Counted from the whole stretch's first letter, positions 451 to 25,291 are shown. The stretch: DNA of 56,633 nucleotides, filler included, from Dugesia japonica (GCA_001938525.1; 5 parts of 5 records of this genome joined end to end with filler, not necessarily neighbours in it); one strand, 5' to 3'. Notes: a model not told the origin generated them from the sequence alone. A program made the numbers and translations.

Positions 451-639
451 TAAGTCAGATTTTATTTTACTTTTTAGTATTTTCTAAGAATTAGTAATGT
501 TAAATAAATTTTCGTATTATTTTATGATAATATAAGAGATAGGAAAATATTTACTTATTGTATATTTTTAGAACATTGCTCACGTGTAAATAAGGCTCAC
601 AATGGAGATTGACATAGTATTATGGTCAATGTATTTTTG

Positions 640-850
640 GGAATTCCAAAATTTGTTATTACAAATGGAAAAAATGCTATGCCACATATAATTTATTATT
701 GACCAAATGCAGATTGTTATTTCAAATGGAAATGATCTCATATCTAATCCACTTTATTTTATGCTAAATGCTAATAATGTCAAATGCACATTATGCTATT
801 CCAAATGCAAATTACGTTATTCCAAAAGAAAATTATCTTATGCACAATTT
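640..850. repeat. Degenerate ~21-bp tandem repeat
   Basis: Recurrent ttattccaaatgcaaatta-like units; explains spurious ORF 707-904. Confidence 0.5.
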
Positions 851-1339
851 TACGAAAACAAGTATGAATTAATCTTTAATTTAATTACTTTTAATGTTAT
901 TTAATAAATGTTTTTATTTAATGTTAATGATAATAAATGATGAAATTATTTAATGTTAATTATAATAAGTAGTAAATTTATATAATTTTAATTAAAATAA
1001 GTATTGAATTTATTTATTATTAATGATAATAAGTGATAATAAAAATTATTAATAACAATAAAATACGTAGATAATTTAAGTAAAGTCAATGATAAAGATG
1101 ATGACATCATTAATGTATATAATAACTTATTATTAATAAGTGATGAAATTATATAATATTAATTATAATAAGTAATGAAATTATTATTGATCATGACGCA
1201 TTTATTGATTTTATTAATGACCTTTTAAGTTACCTATTAACTAACCTTGACCTTTTTACTGAGATTTTTATCGATAATGATTTACAAATATCTATAAGCA
1301 ATACAAAATTAACTTAATTTTATTTAAGAAACTTGTAAA

Positions 1340-2230
1340 ATGTATACCAACTATTGTGGAAATTTAATACATAATGAACACAATCACGAAGTCATGGAAA
1401 ATTGCTGCAGTCTTATTTATTGCGAGAAAAAAATATGTTTGTCCATCATGTACTACAATAGGGTTAGGTACATACAGAGTTTTATAAGACACATGCACAT
1501 CAATTGTCTCAATTATTTTAAAAGAAGATAGTGCTGAAGAAAATTCTCCAAGGACATCAATGTAAGAAGTTTAAGGCTGAACCGGAAGTTATAGTTATTA
1601 AAGATAATTTTATAAACATTGAACCAGTCAAGGTTCTAGTTTTTGAGGATGATATCGAGGAAGAAATGGGCTGGAATAATATTCAAATAATTGAATAACT
1701 AAATGCAGAGGACCTTTTTGATGAAGATGATACAGAAGATCTGTTGCAAAAATATTTGCAAGAAGAAGCACACGTCGGTGGATCTGTTATTGAAACTGTT
1801 ATTGAATCTGTTATTGAAACGGATTTTTACAGATGCCACAAGATCTTGAAATTGGATATTTCAAGATTTAACATGGGAGAGATAATTTTACCAGACACTT
1901 TAAAAAACTGATTAAAGAAATGAAGGATATAAAAATCTAGTTTAGAATTCATAAGAGATCATGAAATAAAAACTTGTCATTTATCTAATAGTGCTATACT
2001 ACTTAATGATAAGTTTTCGAAGAGGGAAATAAGGCATTGAATGAGAAGATCGTTGTAAGAAGCTAAAAAGGAAATAGCTGGACTCTTGGTAGGATATTAG
2101 AAANNAATTTTAAATTGACAAAAATAAGCAAAGTTGTCAGACCGTAGTTCTATTCCAACGCCAGGAAATCTTGTCAGGAAACAAGCAATTGTTAACGTCA
2201 AAACCAGTGATAATAAATGTTTCATATATA
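1340..2230 (+). pseudogene. Polinton/Maverick protein-primed DNA polymerase B, N-terminal fragment
   Basis: SSIPTPGNLVRKQAIVNVKTSDNKCFIYS (2134-2230) resembles the invertebrate Polinton pPolB motif SSYIPLP..I..KKAIINIKN.DNKCFLWS. The upstream part is frameshifted, with a Cys/His-rich start. Confidence 0.6.
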
Positions 2231-7689: not shown

Positions 7690-10600
7690 ATGTTGATCGT
7701 AATTTAAACTTAACATTGTTAAATAAAATTTAATTTATTATAAATTTTTGCCTTTTAAACTGATAATTTTTATTCCTATTAATTTAAAGGCGATAAATTC
7801 TAAATCTTGTGAATTTTAAATTTATGGACTTTAAATTTTAATCTAGAAGCATATAAATTTGAAATGTCGAAACTTATTTGTTATATATTTTAGGCGTTGT
7901 TTATTTAAGTTCTATGATGAAAGTTGTATTTTCAATGAATTCTATATCTTCTGTCGTTGATTCTTATTTTTATGATGAATTCTATATTTTCTATGCTGAT
8001 TCATGTACTTTTCGTGTAGAAACTGTCATTTTATATGACAAAGTGGTTATTTCCAATGTTGAAGTTCTTATTTTCAAATATCATTCATGTAGTTTACATG
8101 TTTGCTTAGAATTTTATCTGGTGGAGCACAACTTTAGTAAAATGGGATGTAATTTTTGTGTAATATCTTACTATTTTACAGTAATGTAATGTAAGTTTGT
8201 CTGATAAAATATATTTTTAGTGTGATGAATAATTTTAACGTGATGGTTTGTAATTTTAGCGTGATGGTTTATAATTTGGTGTCTTAGAACTTTGTGTGAT
8301 TGAATATAATTTTAGTGTAAGGATTATAATTTTAAAGTAATGAACTATATTTTTAGTTTAATAGATTATAGGTCCAACTTGGTTTAGAAATTTTAGATGC
8401 TGACTTAAAATTTTGTGTGATGAGATGTAATTTTAGTGTAATGATTTATAATTTTAACATGTTTGCTAAGGATTTTTATGTGTTTGTTTTGAAATTTTTA
8501 TATATTACAATTATTCTGATGGATTATAATTTTTATGTGTTGGCTTAAAAATATTGTGTTGAGTTAAAGTTTTGTGTCATTAAATGTAATTTAAGTGTGT
8601 CGAATTATAATTTTATGACTTCACTATCAATTTTTACATGTTGAGTGATAATTTTTATACATTACCTTTGAATTTTATGCGATGAAATCTAATTTTAATG
8701 CAACGAATAATTGTTTAGTGAATATCTATTGAAACTTGTATGTCTTTATAATAAAATCCTTATAAAATCATATAAGAACCATAGAAAATCCTTAACATCA
8801 TATGCATAGGGCTTATTTTTCCTATGAAATTATATGTTTTCCTAAGCAAGATTAATGTTAATATTCCCATATATGATATTAATGATAAAACATAAAATAA
8901 CATATTCTAATATATTTCATTAATAATCTCGCAAATAATTTTAAAAAAATAGAAAATTCGATTCGAAATTTAATTAATAAATCGTTTGTTTTGCTGTTTC
9001 AATTTTGAAATAAACACATGTGCTAGCTAATACATAAAGTAAAACTTTTAATATTTCCATTATTTTAAAAATTGGCATCCATTACTGTTACAAAAGGTAA
9101 TGCATCGCCTGTTGATTTCTAATGTGGTAAGCCAAAGAATTACTACAAAAATGAAATGGTTTTCTTCAAGAAACCTATGATTTATGCTTTCCATGTACTA
9201 TTATATTTTCAATTTGATTTTGAATCCTGTAAAAGTTTAGAAATGTGCATACAATATGCTCATGACTAGAATAAGCTTGGACGCTCAATCAACACTGAAT
9301 GGATTATTTTCAAGAATTAATTAAATATCCGATACATCATTCATCAGTTTGAATGGAGATATTCCTTATGAAAATTTAAGTAAATCAATGATCACAACAG
9401 GAATACTTGGGTATAAGAAACTGGAAAACAGTGTAGCTACAATTTGGAAAGTGAGAAGCATTTAAAAGATAAACTCGATTTGTTATAATAAATATTTTAA
9501 ATTTAACATGTCTTCAATTTTTTAATTGTTTACTGATCTATTTTATTACTGTTGTCTTATTATTTTCTATGAAAACATTTCAAAGTGTGAAACTAGTTAA
9601 ACAAGAATTGTTAAATTAGTTTATAATTTTTCTTAGTTTTCATAATTGACATGTGCAGTAATATAACTGATAGACACATCATCGTAGATTATGATGGCTT
9701 CTTCAATGTCTACTCCGGTATATATTTTAATGCGATACCAGTATATGCTTTGTACATTTTTTGAGCAGGCATTACACGTTTTTATTGTATTGATTTAGTT
9801 TTTCTCAATTAAATTATTAAAATCTCATATTACAACAGCAATTTGAGGTTGATAATATAATATCTTGATTCCAAAAAGACTACTTTTCTAAATGAAAACA
9901 TATACTGGACTGTATATATATGTAAATACGGTTCTTCAAGCGTAATCATACAAAAGTATTGAATATCTCAAATTAATTATGATTGTAAGTGATTATAATC
10001 AAATATATTTTGATATCATATTATAAATATTTCTTTCCAATGGTTTATTGTATCTCAGGTTTCTAAATCTTTCGAATTTGAAGAATACTAAAGATTATGT
10101 GAATGATCTATACCAGTAAGCCTTATGCCTATAGTATCAATTTTATAAAAAAATTTAGAACTTAATGAAATTTTATTTTCTTTATCCAGTTTATTCGATT
10201 TTTTTATTGTATTTGTTTCAAAGACTTATTAGTTTAATGAATGTATTTAGATTGATAAGTGTTTTAGTTTAATGAGTTTATTAATTATAATGATTTTATT
10301 TTAAAATATATATAGAGCATAATAAAAGCATAAATTCAGCAGATTAAATAAATAACCTAAGTAACATTTGACCAATTACACCATGTGATAAAACATGAGT
10401 CATCGTTAGCATGTTATTTAAAAATTCTTAATTAATGATCGGTTGTTTCAATATGTTGCATAAATGTTTTCCGTAAAATTTCCTTATTTTACATTGGTTA
10501 GTTATGTTGTTGAATTAGTATATATCGAATTTCATTTTCTATATTAATGAGTTTGTTTAAAAATGTTCCATGTTAAATGCGAGATGATGCAAGCTGAAGA

Positions 10601-12050
10601 AGAATATTTAGGTGCTCTTTGTAAGAAATTTTAAATTATAAGATTGTTAATTTTTATTTAGAAATTGCAAAAAGCATAATTCATGAAATATTTCCAAATC
10701 TTGAAGAAATAAAGCATTCGAATGATGGAGCTTTCTGTAATCATGCTTGGAACAGAACATTTGATCGCTTAGTAAATGATTTTTGGTGCCGATATGTCTA
10801 GAATTAGGTTAATGCTGCAGACAGTGCCGATACAAATTACTGAAGTAAAAAGTCTACATATTGTTGAAAGTTATAAAAGTGTTTTTAAAATAAATATTGT
10901 TTGCAAATTTACTTTTTATTTTACGTATAATGTAATGATTACTAATAAACTTTTGTGTAATAAATAAATCTCATTGCACTTCTAATAATACCCAATTTTC
11001 TCTAATTTGGATAAGGAATAATAACATAAAACTGGTTTTAATAAGTACTTTTTTCTTTATATTATTAAAGTTCTCGTGAACTATATATATTTTTCGAAAT
11101 AAGTCATTTAGATAATATAAAGTTAGTATTAAATTCAATATCGATTGGTTGTTAAATCATGTTATAACATTTCGTGACTGTACAATATGTTTTAAAATCT
11201 TTACTCATGTAAGTACTGATGCTAATGTTAATATTACCCAGGGAGATGTGTACATTAATATTGCTCGGGGAAACAATTTTATAGGAGAAATAAGCCTTAA
11301 TGCATATAATTTTAAGGATTTTTATGGTTCTTATAGGAGGATTTTATCATTAAGACATACAAATTTCAATGTATATTCAATAAAAAATATGTAAACTTTA
11401 TACAAATATAGACAGATTTTATAAGTATATACTAAATTCGCAAATTTACAAACAAATTTTATACTATTATACAAATATAATCAAAGTTATGAGTCGTACA
11501 CATAAAAGTCCATAAATGATAATTGAAATTCCTCACATTTTTCAATCAAACATATTAAAATTGTAATCACACTAAATTGTAAAATTGTATATAAATTTCA
11601 AAGTCAACATGTAAAAATTAATAGACAACACAAAAATAATTAGCTAACATGTTAAAATTATAATCCATTACACTAAAAAATATAGTTCGTAAATCTAAAA
11701 TTACATTTCATCGCATAAAATTCTAAGTCAAAATATAAAAATTATCACTCAACATGTAAAGACAAAATTATAATTCGACACACTAAAATTACATTCCATT
11801 ACACAAATTACCTAATATAAAATTATACACTTTAAAATTTATACAAATAAAAATTTATAAACTTATATTTTATAAATTTAAAATGTCATACAGAAAACTA
11901 ATTATAACATTTTAAAGCTTAAAATTTATGTTATTTGAAATTTATAACTTTTAATTTATAAAAAAGTTACTCAAAGTTTAAATTTATATTATAAAATAAA
12001 TTTTAACAAAACTTGATTACATTAAATTAATTAATTAAGTTGTCGCTTTA
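7690..12050. mobile_element. Foldback-type DNA element with long inverted repeats containing 21-bp tandem arrays
   Basis: 8575-8700 is the reverse complement of 11690-11805 (gtgtgtcgaattataatttt; tttacatgttgagtgataatttttata; gaattttatgcgatgaaat). 8750-8835 is the reverse complement of 11272-11350 (tataagaaccata.aaaatccttaa). The arms are made of taattttagtgtgatgaatta-like units. Outer boundaries are approximate. Confidence 0.65.
10563..10800 (+). pseudogene. Spliced gene fragment inside the foldback element
   Basis: Exon MFHVKCEMMQAEEEYLGAL, a 41-bp gtaag...tttag intron (10621-10661), then IAKSIIHEIFPNLEEIKHSNDGAFCNHAWNRTFDRLVNDFWCRY. The junction as spliced gives a stop. Confidence 0.35.
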
Positions 12051-16872: not shown

Positions 16873-17587
16873 ATGTTTCCAAGAAATTAGATTGCGTGAG
16901 ACGATACGGAATGGAACATGTGTGAGGATTTATGATAATTATGTATGCTTTTAATCGTACTTTATCGATTTGTAATAAAAATTATGTACGATGAAATAAA
17001 CTTTTTTGAATATAAAAAAATAAAAAGTCAATTCTTGACGAAGATAAAGTCGAAATTTAGAATAATTATCAAAAACCAAAAACAATTTTTTATCGAAGCT
17101 TTTATTTTAAATCAATGTTGGAATATACTCTCAAATTTTTGTCATCAACCCCTAATACAAAATTAATAAAATAAAAATCAAATACATCAATTTTTCAAAG
17201 CTTTTTTCCCGTATTCTTAATTTGGACTACACGTATGAAATACCAATATTCTTGAGAAATAGACCAATGATAAGAGAGTTTATTTGAGAGGAGGATGAGA
17301 TCATCCCTTGCCACATTCTTAATGATTACATCTCGAGAAACAAGCATCTTGAATGCTTGAATGATGGACTGGATCAAGTACTCATCTCTGGTTTCGTGAG
17401 CTAAATCTTCTCGTTTTACTTCAACCATAAAAGTAATTTGTAGGTGAAGATTGAGGAATACAGAGAATGTTTCTAATATGAGTCAGCCTTATGAGTCAAA
17501 TCACTAAGTAACTATCGAATTGCTATCAAATACCAAATAAAAAAATATATTTAATATAATATAATTTAATATAAATATATTAAAATC

Positions 17588-17995
17588 CAGGGTTGTTCAA
17601 AGTATGACCCGTGGTCTCTTATAGAGAATATTTTTTAAAATTTTAAAAAATATGATTTTCTCAATTTTATTTAATAATGTGGTTAAATATCAGATACTCT
17701 TATACACGTAATTTCAATTTTACTTAATCCTTCATTCCATTTTGTTGTATTGTTATACACAACTAGCATTAAAAATAAAATTCATTTAAACTTTAAATCT
17801 AAACATCTATTTTTATCCATATTTGTTATTATTTTTAAGAATTAAGATTCTACATCAATGTGCTGCTTTTATAATAAATATAAAGATAAATTTACATTTA
17901 TGCGTTTAACGTCATGTCTGATGTAGGTTAAGATATTGGAAAAGTGGAAAAATGTAAACTGCAGCCAGTGACTCCAGAAAGCTTGGATAACTCAT
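17588..17995. mobile_element. Possible non-autonomous hAT (Charlie-like) element
   Basis: Left end cagggttgttcaaagtatgacccgtgg and right end aaagcttggataactc resemble degenerate hAT-Charlie termini. No clear TSD. Confidence 0.35.
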
Positions 17996-18168
17996 TCAGT
18001 TGTAAAGTCTAACATACGTAATATAAATTTTTTAACTTCAACTAATAATTGAACATTATTTATTGAATTTTACAATATTGTAAAGTTACATTTATACAAT
18101 ATGAGATTGAAGATTTTGAATAGGGCAAAAGTTATTAAATTAATTAAATCAAATTAATTTTTTCCATA

Positions 18169-19617
18169 CTATTTTTTCCCTTTTTTAGGAGAACTCTTTT
18201 TTGACGGAGGAGAACTTTTGCTTTTCTTTTTCTTATCAGGAGACTTTTTAACGTCTTGATTTTCTATTGGTTCAATTTGTTTAGGAGGTCTTGGCCAAAT
18301 TCCATCCATATCGTTAAGTGGCCATTGAACCAGATCAAATCCTTTAATAAATTTCAATGGTTCTGGCCGACGAGTTGGTGGAATTGGAGTCTGTTCCTTA
18401 TCAATAACGTGTTTTAACCATGCCATTTTATCCATATAAAACAAAGTGTCTCGATACCATCTGAACATAACTCTATCTATGTAAAATATTATATGATTTC
18501 TGTGATGATCGACTAAACAAATAATGCCATTTTTAGAAACGGAAAAATGACCCGGTCTGACAACTCGAAGTTCATCAACTTTCCAACCTCCAAAGCTACT
18601 TGTTTCCACACCTCCTTTATGAAATGCTCTTAAAAATCCCCATTGACTATCAGACACAGCGAGTACATTTAAACTATCTAGCCTCAAACAATATGGCTGT
18701 TTCATTCTTTCTAATCCAAACTCATAAATTGCACGAACAGTTATCCTATCAACAACTCTGTAACACATTTCTTTTATTATTTGAAAAACAAAGATTCTTG
18801 CGGGTCTAAGTGCGGCAACGTATAAAAATCCATTACCAGCTGCACAACCACCAGACGTTGCTAGGTGCACACAAAATGGTTCAGTCTTGGACCATCCTTG
18901 TAATCGAAAATCAACTGGAATTAATTTTCGGTAATGAAGTAATTCCATTCTTTGTATAGGATTTCTTATTATATAAATAGTATCATTATCAACTGTTACA
19001 CCTATTGGACGACCTTCGTCTATAAATGATTTTTGCTTTTCTTGATCTATTGACGGATCATCAGGATTATAATTTAATTCAAATTTATAATCACGTGTGT
19101 TTTCAATTTCCCCCTCTGGAGAAAATTGAGTCAGTGTTGTTTTTTTGACCGATGGACATCGAATCAAAGCCAAAATACGCCCAGTTTTTGGTGTTTCAAT
19201 AATTTGATATGGTTCACCTTTTGTTATGATATCAGGTAATTTTACTAAGTCATCAAAACATGGATCCAATTGATATCTCCAAATCTTTCGATTTTGAGGA
19301 TCTGAAACCCACAAATGACCCCATGAAGTAATAAGTGGACAAAATGGATTCCAAGAATATTCTCGATATATAAAATCTGGATTGTTAATATAAGGATACC
19401 ATGGTTGCCGTTTAACGTACATCATTCCCGGACCTTTCGGTGGTAGTGGAGGCGGGGTTTCTGGACGAGGTTCAGGCCAAAATGGTTCTTCAATTGCATC
19501 AGGAGAACCTCTTTTACCTTTTGGTGAATCCTTTTTACCTTTTGGAGAATCTTTCTTTTTCGGTGAATCTTTTTTTGATCCTTTTTTGCTGTCTGGAGAA
19601 CCCTTTTTAGATGGCAT
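18169..19617 (-). CDS. Intronless NHL-repeat-like beta-propeller protein with SPKK/Lys-rich N- and C-terminal tails
   Basis: Uninterrupted 482-aa ORF. Blade-like motifs: GHLWVSDPQNRKIWRY, GEPYQIIETPKTGRIL, GRPIGVTVDNDTIYI, GNGFLYVA, QPYCLRLDSLNVLAVSDSQWG, RPGHFSVSKNGIICLVDHHRNHIIFY. DSPKK/DSPKG repeats at the N-terminus and SSPKKGKK at the C-terminus. Confidence 0.85.
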   Translation of the reverse strand: MPSKKGSPDSKKGSKKDSPKKKDSPKGKKDSPKGKRGSPDAIEEPFWPEPRPETPPPLPPKGPGMMYVKRQPWYPYINNPDFIYREYSWNPFCPLITSWGHLWVSDPQNRKIWRYQLDPCFDDLVKLPDIITKGEPYQIIETPKTGRILALIRCPSVKKTTLTQFSPEGEIENTRDYKFELNYNPDDPSIDQEKQKSFIDEGRPIGVTVDNDTIYIIRNPIQRMELLHYRKLIPVDFRLQGWSKTEPFCVHLATSGGCAAGNGFLYVAALRPARIFVFQIIKEMCYRVVDRITVRAIYEFGLERMKQPYCLRLDSLNVLAVSDSQWGFLRAFHKGGVETSSFGGWKVDELRVVRPGHFSVSKNGIICLVDHHRNHIIFYIDRVMFRWYRDTLFYMDKMAWLKHVIDKEQTPIPPTRRPEPLKFIKGFDLVQWPLNDMDGIWPRPPKQIEPIENQDVKKSPDKKKKSKSSPPSKKSSPKKGKK

Positions 19618-19884
19618 ATTTAATTTATCTTTAATTTATAATATGAATAACAAATTCCAATACAGCATTTGAAATTTATTGATAATTAATATAAATATTA
19701 AATAAAAATTACAAAAAAATTATCAAAGATTATTAGTGTGATAATAGAGAATAAGAAATATGTATAAATAACTATTGTTGTTAAATTTATTTTGGTTTTT
19801 AATTAGAATTTACATTTGTTTATTGTTTTGAATACAACAGAAAATCAATTATAGAAATTAAAAATTTTTAGGAAATTGATTTAA

Positions 19885-19965
19885 ATATTATCGAAGCTTT
19901 TATTTTAATAAAATCTGAAGAAACTTTTAATGGTTACGTCTGACAATTATTCTCACTAAAATTGG
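19885..19965. repeat. Fragment related to the Gypsy LTR at 36596-36969
   Basis: tatcgaagcttttattttaat.aaatct...aatggtta.gtc..acaattattctcac is shared with 36755-36915. Confidence 0.6.
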
Positions 19966-20329
19966 AAAATTCGGAAATATGTAAAAAGTTATTAAACCTG
20001 AGTTCTGGTAAAACTCAAAAGAAAACATAATAGTAATGAATATCAATATCAACAGAGAAACGGTAATGTTGTTTAGGAAAATGTAAAAATGAAAAATTTA
20101 TATTTAAAAGATTTTTATTTTTTATTTTAGTTTAAATAGCCAAAAATGACCAATAAAAATTAATTAAAATAATTTTAATTAGAAAACTACTTATCGTAGT
20201 TCTTAATGAAAATATATTATTTTCGGACGATTTTCTCAACATTGTGAAGTGGTAAATACCGATTCAATTACAGAGATGTTATTATCAAATGTGTTCTGTT
20301 TGGGTGATGGTAAATAAAGCGTTGTGAAT

Positions 20330-21060
20330 TGTATTTCGATACATAAGGCAATTAATACTAAAAAGTGACTTTAAAAGATTATTTTTTATTTGTTGAAAAT
20401 AGTTGACAAGTTTCAGGGTTGTTTAAGATTGGCATTCGAGAAAGAAAAAGATGCTGTCAAATATTTTCAAAATCTGAATCACTACAGACGTGAAATTAAA
20501 GAGATCAATGTTTAGCAAAGGAGTTAGTTCAAAGATTATTTTCAAATAAATTGTTTATGAAGGAGAAAATGACATCAAAGATGCTAGTATTTTGTGCAGA
20601 TAATAAAACAGTTGAAGAAGGATGAGTTTGCGGAAACTACGGGATATAGAAGAAATTGATAAAACAATAACAATAGTAGATTGAATAGAAAAAATGAAGA
20701 GATTTTATTAATAGAGTTAGAAGTTACGCCAGAGCTAAACGTTAAGGTTATCAGATACCGATAAACTAAAAAATGAGTTTACTGGTTTATCAAAGAGAGG
20801 AAAGACGAAAGATTGAATGTTGGTTATATCATAAGTTTGTCAGCCCAAGGTAAAGTAAAGTCCAGCAAAGTAAATGATAGAGTGTTGGACTTGTCATAAA
20901 GAATTACATGTGAGTCAAAATTTTCCGAGAAGCCAATATTTGTTGGGATTATGGAAAAGTGAAAATGTTGAAGAGAGGCCTGAAAATTTCTACGCCAATA
21001 TGAAAATGAAAAGAACAACCGAGAAATTCAAGAGAGAAAAATATACAGGCGATTGAAAAT
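20330..21060 (+). pseudogene. LTR-retrotransposon gag remnant with degenerate zinc knuckle
   Basis: IECWTCHKELHVSQNFP fits a decayed CX2CX4HX4C knuckle; upstream are broken, helical gag-like frames. Confidence 0.5.
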
Positions 21061-21769
21061 GGTGAAATGGATATGCACAATGCATATGAAAAAGTCAATG
21101 AAAACGATTTCAGAAGGCAGTACTCAAAGAGCAGAGCTCCAGCTAGTATAAAAGATTGGTAGGAGCAATCCATTTACAAATGAATTAACTGATTGTTCTC
21201 AATGGACCGAAAAGTTGGAAAGAAAATATACATATTTCCAAAGAAAGATAAGTTTGTTAATAATAGAAAAACAGAATTCGGAAGATTCAATATTATATAA
21301 TTAAGGATAAATCAAGACTGTTTAAAGTTTAATAAGTGAAAAATACTAACCTTATAATAATTTATTGTATTTTGATTGGCTGAATATAATAAAGTAAATA
21401 TGTATATGTATAAAATCTTACTTAAAGTTTAATAAGTGATTATATTAAATAAAAAAGTAAGAAAAAATAATACACACCAAGCACACACATAAATACACAT
21501 ATTTTTACTACCTATAAGATTACAAACTTATTAAACCTTTAACAGTATATTAGACATAAATGCATAAATTAAAAATATTTTATANNNNNNNNNNNNNNNN
21601 NNNNNNNNNNNNNNNNNNNNNNNNNNNNNNNNNNNNNNNNNNNNNNNNNNNNNNNNNNNNNNNNNNNNNNNNNNNNNNNNNNNNNNNNNNNNNNNNNNNA
21701 AAACTTAATATTATGATAAATAATTTGGTAATCATCATACAACATTGTACTGAATAACTGAAAAATAGT

Positions 21770-22540
21770 TTAATACATTGAAGAAATTAATGAAGACTTT
21801 TCATTTCTCGGCACTGTTATTTTCACGATATTTTTCACACACATATTTTGCATTATTATGTAATGGTTTTTAATATCTTTTACTGCTTCGCGTAATTTAT
21901 AATAAAATACTTCATCATGCTCAATGATTCCTTGGATAAAATCTGACACATGTGAGAATTTCAATAATTTTGTAAATATTTTACCACGTTGATTGAAATA
22001 GTCGGTGAAAATATCCAAATCATTAACGAGTTGAGATTCGATTGAACTCAAACAGCTGATCACTTCTTCTTGAACTGAAACACCAAAATTATTCCCATCG
22101 GCAATTTCAGGAACCTTTAATTGAATCCATAACAATAACATTTTTACATCTTGGAGATTTTCAATCATTATCGGTTTTACAAGATTGAGAATGTCAATTA
22201 ATATTTTATTTGACTGCAGTTTTTCAACATCACTATAAGGAATTACTCGGCCGGGATTTTCAATAGAGCTTGAATCTTCGGAAGATGACAATTCAGTCTG
22301 CAAATTCTTTTTCTTATACTTTGATAAAGACTTTTTCAATGAATTTATTTGCTGTTTATTTTCCTTCTTTATTATGCCAATTACTTTTTCAGAATGAAAA
22401 TGTTCAGAACTGATAAGTTTGTTGATGACAACGATTTTCTGTGGGATTTTAACTTTTAATAGAGATTTACTTGAAGTGTGTAGATGTTTTTTAAAATCGA
22501 CCAATTCCGGAAATTGGTGAGATGATTTCTCGTTTGACAT
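21770..22540 (-). CDS. PSME3: Proteasome activator PA28/11S REG (gamma-like) subunit
   Basis: 256-aa intact ORF with activation-loop motif LWIQLKVPEIADGNNFGVSVQEE, YFNQRGK..TKLLKFSHVSDF, KNIVKITVPR, a C-terminal MY, and a basic insert (KKSLSKYKKK) like the REG-gamma NLS region. Confidence 0.93.
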   Translation of the reverse strand: MSNEKSSHQFPELVDFKKHLHTSSKSLLKVKIPQKIVVINKLISSEHFHSEKVIGIIKKENKQQINSLKKSLSKYKKKNLQTELSSSEDSSSIENPGRVIPYSDVEKLQSNKILIDILNLVKPIMIENLQDVKMLLLWIQLKVPEIADGNNFGVSVQEEVISCLSSIESQLVNDLDIFTDYFNQRGKIFTKLLKFSHVSDFIQGIIEHDEVFYYKLREAVKDIKNHYIIMQNMCVKNIVKITVPRNEKSSLISSMY

Positions 22541-22706
22541 TGTTATTTAACTTTACAATGAAATTATTATTACTTTTATATTGGTTTTTTAAAAATTAAA
22601 TCGAAAGCTGATATAAAATGAATTATTATAAGGTTAGTATTTTAATGCAATTTTTCACTTATTAAACTTAATTAATTATTAGAATGAAAAAAATTTATGC
22701 TTTTAA

Positions 22707-22957
22707 CAGTAGTGGGCAAATGTTTTTAAGTTACGATACCCCAATTTATTTTTTCGCAATTTAAAGCGGTTCCAAAAATAATAATTTAAATTCTTCTTGA
22801 AAAAGTTAGAAAAATATACAAAATGCCAGAAAGTATAAAGATAACATCTTTTAATTTTTTATGTAAGATTGAAAATCAATGCAACGCATGAGCTTGGCGC
22901 TGTGAACACTTTTTTTTAAATTGTTATACTTTTCGCAACACCATTTGCCCAGCAGTG
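22707..22957. mobile_element. MITE with ~15-bp hAT-like terminal inverted repeats
   Basis: cagtagtgggcaaat ... atttgcccagcagtg (reverse complement cactgctgggcaaat). No matching 8-bp TSD. Confidence 0.55.
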
Positions 22958-23346
22958 CGGTATCAAATGTCTAAATTGAATATGGTAAGGGACTGTCCAT
23001 TATTATGCGAACAATTTTCAGGCAATATTCAACTTCTTTCCCATTGTCAAAAACTTTTAAATTTTCAATGAACTATCACACACCCACAAATTAACAATAT
23101 GTTAACTAATTTCTTGGATAGTTTGCATTTATTGATAAAAAGGTTCATTGTTGATAGACTGCTTTACCTACTCTTCGGCTCAACTTTAGAGGTGCATTCT
23201 ATTGTCGATACATTACTTTCAATCTTTGTTTATTTTCTTCTATTTTATTATTTGTACAATTTGTTTGCTAAATTGCTAAATCCTCTATTGCCTTCTTTTG
23301 TCTCTTGGATCACTTGTTTATTATCGATAAGTTGGTTATGAAAACA

Positions 23347-23870
23347 CTAAAAATGTGCTTCACATAATATTGCATCTACATCACTCCCTCTTTTCGCAAA
23401 ATTGACGTCCTCGTCGATATCTTGCACCAGGTACTTAGTTTCATTCCATCGTCTCTTTTGTTTCGTTGTCGACAAAAATCCTCCTTTAGCATGTACTGCC
23501 TCGATCAAATTCATCCGTTTTCTTGTCTCCTGCAATAAATTTACTGAATATATCTTGAAATCTTTCTCCGCACTTCGATAGCATTTACCACATAATTTCA
23601 TTATATTGCCTTTGTTGATTGGACATATGGTAGGCTTCCATTCTTTACATTTCTTGCGTGGTATTGATTCAGTCTCGTTTGTACTTCTTATTGATAACCG
23701 ATTATCGAAAATCCAATACTATTGGTTCTTTGTAGTAACTCTTTGAATTCGGCTTCAAATTATCTTGTGTATTCAGTCCTTTCATGTTGAATCGTCCACA
23801 TCTTGGATTGTCGCATTTTCGATTCCCTTTCTTTAAGTCGTCTGCCACTGAAGAATAATATCAATTAAGT
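23347..23870 (-). pseudogene. Ty3/Gypsy pol (RT connection/RNase H) fragment
   Basis: CYRSAEKDF (cf. S..L..AEKNY) and KRRWNETKYLVQDIDEDVNFAKRGSDVDA (cf. RW...LQ.YD..I.Y.KG..N..ADA). Confidence 0.45.
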
Positions 23871-24309
23871 ATGTCTATTTTATTTTCGTAAATATTTAAT
23901 TTATGGTTTAATTCAAATTTTTGCAAAATTTCGTCAGGAGTTAATTCAATATTGCATTTGATAGGATTCGCTGCTGTTGATCCCTTCATGTGAATTCCTA
24001 AGCACTGCATTTTATTTCTAATGATTCCTTTGACATTGCTTAAACTAATACCACACCATTATTTATATGAATCTGTGATTTTTATCAACTCAATTGTCAT
24101 TCTACTAAATTTATTAGCGATTTTCTTTGCTTCATCGCATAAAAACCTGCACTAAAAGAGAATTGAGTGTACAGAAATGAATTGAGTGCTGAGCCTGAAA
24201 TGCGTTTGTAAATAACGATAATAGAACCTGAATTTAAAGATTTGTGCAAAACAAAGCGAATTCTTACCAGTTATTAAAACTGAAACGTTTTAAAGTACAT
24301 ATTAAATTA

Positions 24310-24450
24310 ATATGCTATTAATAGGGCAATCTTTTTTAACCTTAAAAAGAAGAAAAACTTTACTTTTTTTTGACCAATATTTTGACTTAATAATGAAAAC
24401 TTTTGATTTTATGTTTCCTTTTTAAACAATTATCACTGCTTAGTAGTCTT
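24310..24450. repeat. Dispersed repeat (inverted copy at 31990-32105; partial copy at 24690-24790)
   Basis: agggcaatcttttttaac...tttttgaccaatatt.tgacttaat...aaacaattat.actgcttagtag. Confidence 0.75.
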
Positions 24451-24859
24451 AAAATTTATGAAAATTTAGGCTTGTAAATGAAAAATATATCAAGAGTTTA
24501 CATTTTATTGAACACTTTAACAACATGATTTCATTACCAAATTTGAGGGTCAAAGTTTCGGTCTTTTGCTAAAGATTTACTCAACATGGAAAACCTTCTT
24601 TTGACACAAGCTGAAATAGGCTGAAATTTCATTAAAAAATTATTCCATTGGTGAAATTGATTCTTTTTTCATGTACGTTATTGTCATTATTAGGACAAAC
24701 TTTTATTTATCATGTTAAAAAGAAAAGTTTGACTTTTTTGACCAAATTTCGGACTTTATAATGCAACGTTTTTACTCATTACTCCATTTTTCACGAATCT
24801 TCCTTCTATTTACTTTTTGATATGACATGGATCTTCAATGATTTGCAATTCAGAAACTT

Positions 24860-25115
24860 CCTACGACAGACTCGATAGTGCAATCTGTACTCTCGGCAGG
24901 AGTAATAAGTTCAGCCAAAACAATATAATTTGGACAATCTTACTCAAACTCTTGCTACCTTTGCATTTGAAACACTTTGTTTTGCCTGCTTTACAAGTCT
25001 TCCATCATATTTAAAGTTGTCAATAGTTGCTTTGATCGTCACAAAGTGCTCGGCAAAGTACTTCACAGCATTCAACCAACTTGCCCATCTTGTGACAACA
25101 GGCTGGGGCGGATTT
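24860..25115 (-). pseudogene. hAT-superfamily transposase fragment
   Basis: Minus-strand frame NPPQPVVTRWASWLNAVKYFAEHFVTIKATIDNF matches the PP.P..TRWG.WL.A..YY motif. Confidence 0.7.
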
Positions 25116-25291
25116 GTTTAAAAAAGTGATATCGAAAAATGCATGATTTATTATAAAATCAGAAACAAAGAACATTAGTTTAAAAATGGTTTATGGTATT
25201 ATTTCAGTATCTAAGAATTACGAATGATAATTAATGAGAGTATATATTAAAAACAATTGAGAGTATACAATTAAAAAGTGTTGATTTTTTA

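Follow-up and report, generated by a model that had tools for sequence, protein, structure and literature searches.

A flatworm protein with a predicted NHL-type β-propeller between two polycationic tails, and its sexual-stage orthologue in Dugesia

What might a protein do that holds a β-propeller between two lysine-rich tails reminiscent of histone tails? This question is raised by a gene of the planarian Dugesia japonica (GCA_001938525.1) within a window of 56,633 nucleotides, the whole stretch of DNA that was analysed, in which five pieces of the genome are joined with filler. The gene lies in the piece 16873..25291, which is AT-rich (about 24–36% G+C). Because the sequence around the ORF has a G+C content of about 28%, an ORF length of 482 residues is unexpected by chance. 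An earlier note, made from the sequence alone, had claimed a tail-linker-propeller-linker-tail layout at 18169-19617, and we confirmed it, with the ORF located exactly there on the minus strand. From the N-terminus to the C-terminus, the protein is composed of a Lys/Ser-Pro tail, a Pro-rich linker, a six-bladed propeller (as predicted), two helices, a Pro-rich linker, and a Lys/Ser-Pro tail. The features are as follows.

18169..19617, minus strand: complete single-exon ORF of 482 amino acids plus stop, with an ATG start and a colinear RNA-type contig
19498..19617, minus strand: N-terminal Lys/Ser-Pro tail, residues 1-40, with 15 K/R, five S-P sites, and the heptad KDSPKGK about 2.4 times
19429..19497, minus strand: short acidic hinge and Pro-rich linker, residues 41-63; the poly-Pro is conserved family-wide
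19348..19428, minus strand: strongly conserved lead-in, residues 64-90, with the motif R-Q-x-W-Y-P-Y-x-N and strand 82-84
18478..19374, minus strand: predicted six-bladed NHL-type β-propeller, residues 82-380, from AlphaFold2 and from Foldseek and VIA matches
18400..18474, minus strand: pair of C-terminal helices that follow blade 6, residues 382-406, with a conserved R-W-Y-D motif
18280..18390, minus strand: C-terminal Pro-rich linker region, residues 410-446, TPIPPTRRPEP ... WPRPPK
18169..18252, minus strand: Lys/Ser-Pro tail at the C-terminus, residues 456-482 and stop codon; 13 K/R, three S-P sites
18123..18168, minus strand: short 3' UTR, within the span of the RNA-type contig

The gene is transcribed and under purifying selection. 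An RNA-type contig (run X8, 54 Mb) covers 18123..19596 colinearly at a word depth of 195, and its flanks are bare. The run is presumed to be RNA; a depth of 195 is impossible for genomic DNA in a 54-Mb run, and the contig is therefore best read as an abundant mRNA. No joint interrupts it, which bears out the absence of introns noted earlier. Two deep oligo-dT RNA runs with the same species label contain 0–3 reads on the gene per approximately 1.8 Gb read, and a third run contains 15 reads. When these counts are set against the depth of 195, expression is strongly sample-dependent. The contig shows 37 differences from the genome and represents a diverged allele or strain. In the ORF, 22 of the codon changes between them are synonymous and 8 are non-synonymous, indicating purifying selection. 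The contig stops matching at 19596, 21 nt inside the ORF, with 12 unlike letters beyond this point. This 5' mismatch may stem from an indel or allelic variation within the repeats that encode the tail, from use of an alternative 5' end, or from faulty assembly.

In the Pfam search, the sole match of the protein was a weak one to NHL (14.6 bits, E of 0.034, below the cut-off of 20 bits). No RING, B-box, histone fold, or H1/H5 winged-helix domain was found in it by this search, and no nucleic-acid-binding domain was detected. The stretch ahead of blade 1 comprises only about 90 residues of low-complexity or linker sequence, and a tripartite motif (RING, B-box, and coiled coil) is absent according to Pfam. 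The lack of RING and B-box had been read correctly from the sequence, as had that of a signal peptide, since the N-terminus is hydrophilic. A secreted or tegumental protein was rejected because a hydrophobic N-terminus is missing. Tandem-repeat scans of the piece revealed a 21-nt repeat in the N-terminal tail, which encodes the heptad, and two AT-rich repeats outside the ORF, and nothing else. A search with Rfam gave no match anywhere in 16873..25291.

The core was modeled alone with AlphaFold2 from an alignment of 21 family sequences; the full-length protein modeled with 6 sequences gave a pLDDT of 39. The core model has a pLDDT of 73.9 and a pTM of 0.76, and it contains about 23 strands followed by two helices. 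On the basis of the model strands, blades 1 to 6 correspond to residues 91-131, 134-181, 203-240, 247-301, 307-350, and 354-380, and the strand at 82-84 was assigned as the closing strand of blade 6. Residues 184-201 form a disordered loop that leads from blade 2 to blade 3. In a Foldseek search against the PDB, the top matches were all six-bladed NHL propellers with E values down to 9e-12 (the NHL domain of TRIM71), and the top list consisted of TRIM71, the designed Pizza6, TRIM2/3, LIN-41, Thin, Brat, and Mei-P26. The VIA alignment to the NHL domain of Brat gave a Z of 25.6 and an rmsd of 3.0 Å for 258/279 residues.

Searches of the PDB by sequence, with the single sequence or a profile, gave marginal matches to TRIM71 (E of 0.05–0.2), which are indecisive alone. 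Outside the family, the profile retrieved only weak multi-stretch matches from 1.84 billion representative proteins; all eight that were checked (8/8, among P0037-P0054) carry 3–15 Pfam NHL repeats. Two relatives in the family do exceed the Pfam NHL cut-off of 20, namely P0035 (20.5 bits) and P0036 (24.3 bits). By its modeled fold and by profile, the protein is thus assigned to the NHL-repeat propellers despite its own sub-threshold Pfam score. The approximately six NHL-like blades suggested by the earlier note are borne out by the weak Pfam NHL match, the family profile, and the superposition of the AlphaFold2 model on NHL domains; the predicted fold of the core is a TRIM-NHL-type propeller by AlphaFold2, Foldseek, and VIA (VIA Z of 25.6 to Brat).

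In the VIA ranking, the NHL domains of animal TRIM-NHL proteins come first (Z of 23–25.6), followed by PknD and Pizza6 (21–22) and by SGL/DFPase propellers (about 20). The RNA-binding members of the TRIM-NHL group (Brat, Mei-P26, LIN-41, NHL-2, and TRIM71) accordingly outrank the PknD/Pizza and SGL/DFPase structures (Z of 23–25.6 versus 20–22). An enzyme of the PAL/SGL/lactonase/DFPase type is not favoured because such propellers rank lower, at a Z of about 20; the invariant D, N, G, and P of blades 5 and 6 coincide with the structural NHL consensus. Horizontal transfer from bacteria is also unsupported, since animal TRIM-NHL domains are structurally closer. Bacterial NHL proteins (type IX secretion tails) are among the first matches outside the family owing to the make-up of the database and their many repeats.

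What is known of NHL propellers comes largely from TRIM-NHL regulators, in which they form the end that binds RNA or a partner. Several of these proteins regulate the germline and contact RNA through the top face of the propeller, an electropositive surface in Brat and TRIM71. Compared with this group (Brat, Mei-P26, LIN-41/TRIM71, NHL-2, TRIM2/3, and Thin), the protein shares the predicted six-bladed NHL propeller, for which they are the best structural matches, with superpositions at a Z of 23–25.6 and an rmsd of 2.5–3.2 Å over about 250–260 of about 280 residues. However, the sequence similarity is marginal, and RING, B-box, coiled coil, and filamin domains are absent according to Pfam. The protein also has parts beyond the propeller: a lead-in on its N-terminal side, helices on its C-terminal side, the Pro-rich linkers, and the pair of polycationic tails. 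The core differs in charge as well: it is near neutral in most members of the flatworm family (pI of 5.5–7.6, net charge of −7 to +1), with +7 in the D. japonica protein. An electropositive RNA face like that of Brat or TRIM71 is therefore not suggested.

Stand-alone NHL proteins, such as the bacterial PknD sensor domain, the designed Pizza6, and the NHLRC-type proteins, resemble the protein in having an NHL propeller without TRIM modules, and the family profile reaches many of them (Z of 21–22 to PknD/Pizza6). They differ in being extracellular, secreted, or enzyme-linked, they have no basic tails, and they rank structurally below the TRIM-NHL domains.

Relatives were found by word-index and exhaustive searches in the trematodes Clonorchis, Opisthorchis, Fasciola, Paragonimus, Trichobilharzia, and Heterobilharzia and in the cestodes Spirometra, Sparganum, Schistocephalus, Dibothriocephalus, Mesocestoides, Taenia, and Anoplocephala. 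P0035 is a protein of the monogenean Cichlidogyrus casuarinus and is 26% identical (its accession appears in PMC11727194); P0036 and P0069 are about 23% identical to the D. japonica protein. At the 50% clustering level, the family has only six representatives. The named relatives are all annotated as 'hypothetical' or 'unnamed', and none with a named source lies outside the flatworms in the annotated proteins and assemblies searched. Among relatives with a named source, the family is thus, as judged from these searches, restricted to flatworms. The gene consists of a single exon wherever genomic DNA was fetched (Clonorchis L003, Spirometra L004, Cichlidogyrus L002, and L001), which indicates that the absence of introns is ancestral to the family.

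Copy number varies within the family. The Spirometra locus holds three tandem single-exon copies about 8.5 kb apart (562..2046, 10001..11533, and 18475..20004), which encode 440, 510, and 509 amino acids, and Sparganum has three paralogues with adjacent numbering. No family member from Schistosoma occurs in the match lists from annotated proteins and assemblies, although the schistosomatids Trichobilharzia and Heterobilharzia are represented. One Heterobilharzia copy (P0034) is devoid of several conserved segments. Both observations could reflect lineage loss or decay, or only missing annotation.

The earlier note had described the tails as SPKK repeats at both ends. Two Lys/Ser-Pro tails are present, but strict S-P-K-K occurs only twice in the protein (residues 18 and 476), and the term 'repeats' was generous. 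Besides Lys and Arg, the N-terminal tail contains 8 Ser and 6 Pro, and the C-terminal tail contains 7 Ser. Together they have eight S-P sites, three of which are full S-P-x-K/R sites; apart from SPKK, the tail sites read SPKG, SPDS, SPDA, SPDK, and SPPS. The net charges of the two tails are +8 and +10, and the pI of the whole protein is 9.5. In the linkers, the stretch P55-P60 on the N-terminal side is nearly invariant across the family, and the C-terminal Pro segments are located at residues 410-420 and 441-446.

In the orthologues, the charge is retained rather than the motif. The N-terminal tail has a net charge of +4 to +14 in 21/21 family members, and among the 18 members from trematodes, cestodes, and D. 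japonica, the C-terminal tail carries +6 to +16. The expectation that orthologues keep both tails therefore holds for trematodes and cestodes, which are basic at both ends, but what is conserved is charge and not SPKK. The exceptions are the monogenean P0035, with a short and nearly uncharged C-terminal tail (net +1), and the most distant members P0036 and P0069, in which this tail is absent. S-P-K is frequent in the D. japonica protein, the trematodes, and the diphyllobothriid cestodes, whereas in cyclophyllidean cestodes the tails read GSKGKGSK and S-P-K is wholly absent. This loss speaks against the idea that the whole family shares CDK-type regulation. A cestode member (P0025) has an insert of about 70 K/G/S residues (GSKGKG) in the propeller loop between blades 2 and 3, and in P0036 and P0069 this loop holds a K-rich stretch that is shorter and arose independently. 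Since charge is kept, S-P-K drifts, and extra K-rich loop inserts are found, selection seems, from the family sequences, to act on disordered polycationic tails as such rather than on the SPKK/CDK motif.

The same data bear on another explanation, a protein-protein adaptor that tethers no polyanion and whose tails serve as nuclear or nucleolar targeting signals or are simply tolerated low-complexity sequence. Tail composition varies freely from lineage to lineage, as such an adaptor would allow, and K-rich runs such as KKKD..KGKK resemble classical nuclear localisation signals. However, both tails have been kept across a very deep divergence in the trematodes, the cestodes, and the planarian, with a short C-terminal tail in the monogenean, and the independent gain of K-rich loop inserts exceeds the needs of a targeting signal. 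We therefore regard a plain adaptor as very improbable.

An expression context is provided by an orthologue from Dugesia ryukyuensis. According to a study of that species, the transcript TR4019|c0_g1_i1 (1694 nt) is among the 40 most sexual-specific ones, with a log2FC of 13.6 for sexual over asexual worms and an FDR of 2e-135 (PMC6467871). Its best-hit description there is the Opisthorchis locus tag T265_14384 (PMC6467871), which is the family member P0008 in the cluster of P0003 and appears once in the literature searched. The four TR4019 primers (two pairs) given in the supplement (PMC6467871) all map inside the ORF with 0, 1, 1, and 2 mismatches; TR4019 is therefore a direct orthologue. 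Because primers were published for it, it is one of the 21 validated sexual genes. In that study, qRT-PCR confirmed 21/21 of these genes, and in situ hybridisation of the set placed 17/21 in testes, 3/21 in yolk glands, and 1/21 elsewhere (PMC6467871). The one gene expressed elsewhere is TR28851, another gene, so that the remaining counts give about 85% for testis. TR4019 is thus probably expressed in the testis, on the counts for the set (PMC6467871), and the three yolk-gland genes count against an assured testis reading. The earlier suggestion of a protein that is 'perhaps sperm-specific' gains from this: the orthologue is sexual-specific in a set that is 17/21 testis, but the testis itself is only probable for TR4019. 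When the trematode and cestode orthologues were searched for in the literature by locus tag and accession, nothing beyond this Dugesia paper (PMC6467871) came up.

Taking these data together, we propose, with a probability of roughly 0.45, that the protein is a flatworm-restricted NHL propeller of the sexual stage, most likely of testis or spermatids, that acts as a two-armed polycationic tether. The Pro-rich linkers would hold the stand-alone propeller between two disordered polycationic Lys/Ser(-Pro) tails. The tails may serve as non-specific electrostatic anchors for a polyanion, possibly tuned by phosphorylation in lineages that keep S-P-K sites, while the propeller would supply a specific binding surface. 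The whole protein may thus be a two-armed tether or cross-linker during sperm differentiation. A conceptual parallel is RCC1, whose propeller docks on a specific surface and whose short basic N-terminal tail, which contains S-P-K, contacts DNA. The likeness goes no further, because RCC1 is a seven-bladed propeller of RCC1 repeats with a single tail, and no relationship in sequence or fold was seen.

As the polyanion, nucleic acid is favoured. Condensing sperm chromatin is a tentative candidate for the target of the tails, given their resemblance to the SPK(K/R) tails that sperm histones carry in echinoids and hydrozoans (PMC9903204). In these two groups, the use of such tails on sperm-specific histones to package chromatin is well established (PMC9903204). 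Stored spermatid mRNA may be the target instead, a doubtful proposal that follows from the RNA bound by the closest structural relatives (Brat, Mei-P26, LIN-41, NHL-2, and TRIM71).

In its strict form, the proposal of the earlier note is a sperm nuclear basic protein of the H1 type, in which the propeller would replace the winged-helix domain and the SPKK tails, switched by CDK, would occupy the minor groove of AT-rich DNA. The genome is very AT-rich, and the layout of tail, globule, and tail suits an H1-like protein. The Lys/Ser/Pro tails with S-P-K resemble those of H1 and H2B sperm histones in echinoids and hydrozoans (PMC9903204), and, as with these histones, expression is tied to the sexual and probably male germline state, as the data for TR4019 suggest (PMC6467871). 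The protein nevertheless has neither a histone fold nor H15, and its tails flank a propeller at both ends. With two strict SPKK and only three full S-P-x-K/R sites, its motif content is low, and the motif is not kept family-wide: it is missing in cyclophyllidean cestodes, and P0036/P0069 miss the C-terminal tail entirely. Tail charges of +8 and +10 are small compared with an H1 C-terminal domain, and the protein is large and only moderately basic, with a globular domain that is near neutral in most members. To our knowledge, no NHL propeller binds nucleosomes, which counts against an H1-like role, and we know of no sperm nuclear basic protein that resembles a 482-residue protein with a globular domain of 300 residues. 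The modest charge, the loss of SPKK in one cestode order, the loss of the C-terminal tail, and the large near-neutral core weaken a strict H1-like role, which we consider improbable. It is similarly unlikely that the family forms a new class of sperm chromatin proteins peculiar to flatworms, whose NHL propeller, which would probably go back to the retroposed 3' part of a TRIM-NHL gene, stands in for the H1 globular domain and whose phosphorylatable polycationic tails help to pack the thread-like nucleus. The protein itself is neither a TRIM-NHL protein, nor a histone, nor a protamine-like protein.

The two-armed tether we prefer could also bind a polyanion other than nucleic acid, and the tubulin tails of sperm microtubules may be a target of its arms, albeit a doubtful one. 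A distinct alternative is a microtubule-associated protein of spermatids or sperm. Its basic S-P tails would attach to tubulin at the acidic C-terminal tails and cross-link either the row of cortical microtubules or the axonemes, and its propeller and poly-Pro linkers would dock cytoskeletal partners. Poly-Pro stretches are commonly bound by SH3, WW, and profilin modules, and linkers of this type are more typical of cytoskeletal and signalling adaptors; those of the family are conserved. Some TRIM-NHL propellers bind cytoskeletal partners and not RNA, and Thin and TRIM2/3 are among the structural matches. The symmetric basic tails fit a bundler, and all relatives with a named source are from flatworms, a group with an unusual sperm cytoskeleton. 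Together with the poly-Pro linkers, these two points make microtubules a serious rival. The data accommodate a microtubule or another polyanion target as readily as the phospho-regulated condensing of chromatin or RNA put forward in the earlier note. The top-40 list places TR4019 beside several α- and β-tubulins, a TCP-1 subunit, and KLHL10 (PMC6467871), but the co-listing with tubulins merely reflects strong expression in the testis. In addition, Pfam and PDB searches gave no similarity to known microtubule-binding domains. On balance, a dedicated microtubule-associated protein appears doubtful.

For the polycationic tether, the literature on SPKK, NHL, and flatworm sperm that we searched contains no description of the family or of an NHL propeller between two polycationic tails; a stand-alone NHL propeller framed by two arms like histone tails is an architecture undescribed there. 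Because the family is kept from planarians to flukes and tapeworms and its planarian orthologue is among the most strongly sexual-specific transcripts, it is a candidate for a lineage-specific step in flatworm sperm formation, such as chromatin packing, mRNA storage, or microtubule bundling. Its conservation in parasites, with no orthologues found outside flatworms in the annotated proteins and assemblies searched, makes it relevant to the reproduction of parasitic flatworms.

The surroundings of the gene contain a second single-exon gene at 21770..22540 on the minus strand, the same strand as the propeller gene and about 2.2 kb upstream of it. It encodes a 256-residue homologue of the proteasome activator PA28 (PA28_C with an E of 2.9e-40; PA28_N with an E of 3.6e-4, just below the cut-off). 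Immediately downstream of this ORF, a run of N at approximately 21590..21730 marks an assembly gap or masked sequence. Between the two genes, about 1 kb (20373..21372) shows a strong excess of purines on the plus strand, with a GC skew of +0.28 to +0.38 and an AT skew of +0.19 to +0.23; this stretch holds no long ORF and no Pfam or Rfam match. Other small ORFs of the piece gave no Pfam matches. Several short Cys-containing ORFs, with no significant Pfam match, follow each other in a row at 23347..24010 on the minus strand and could be the exons of a spliced gene.
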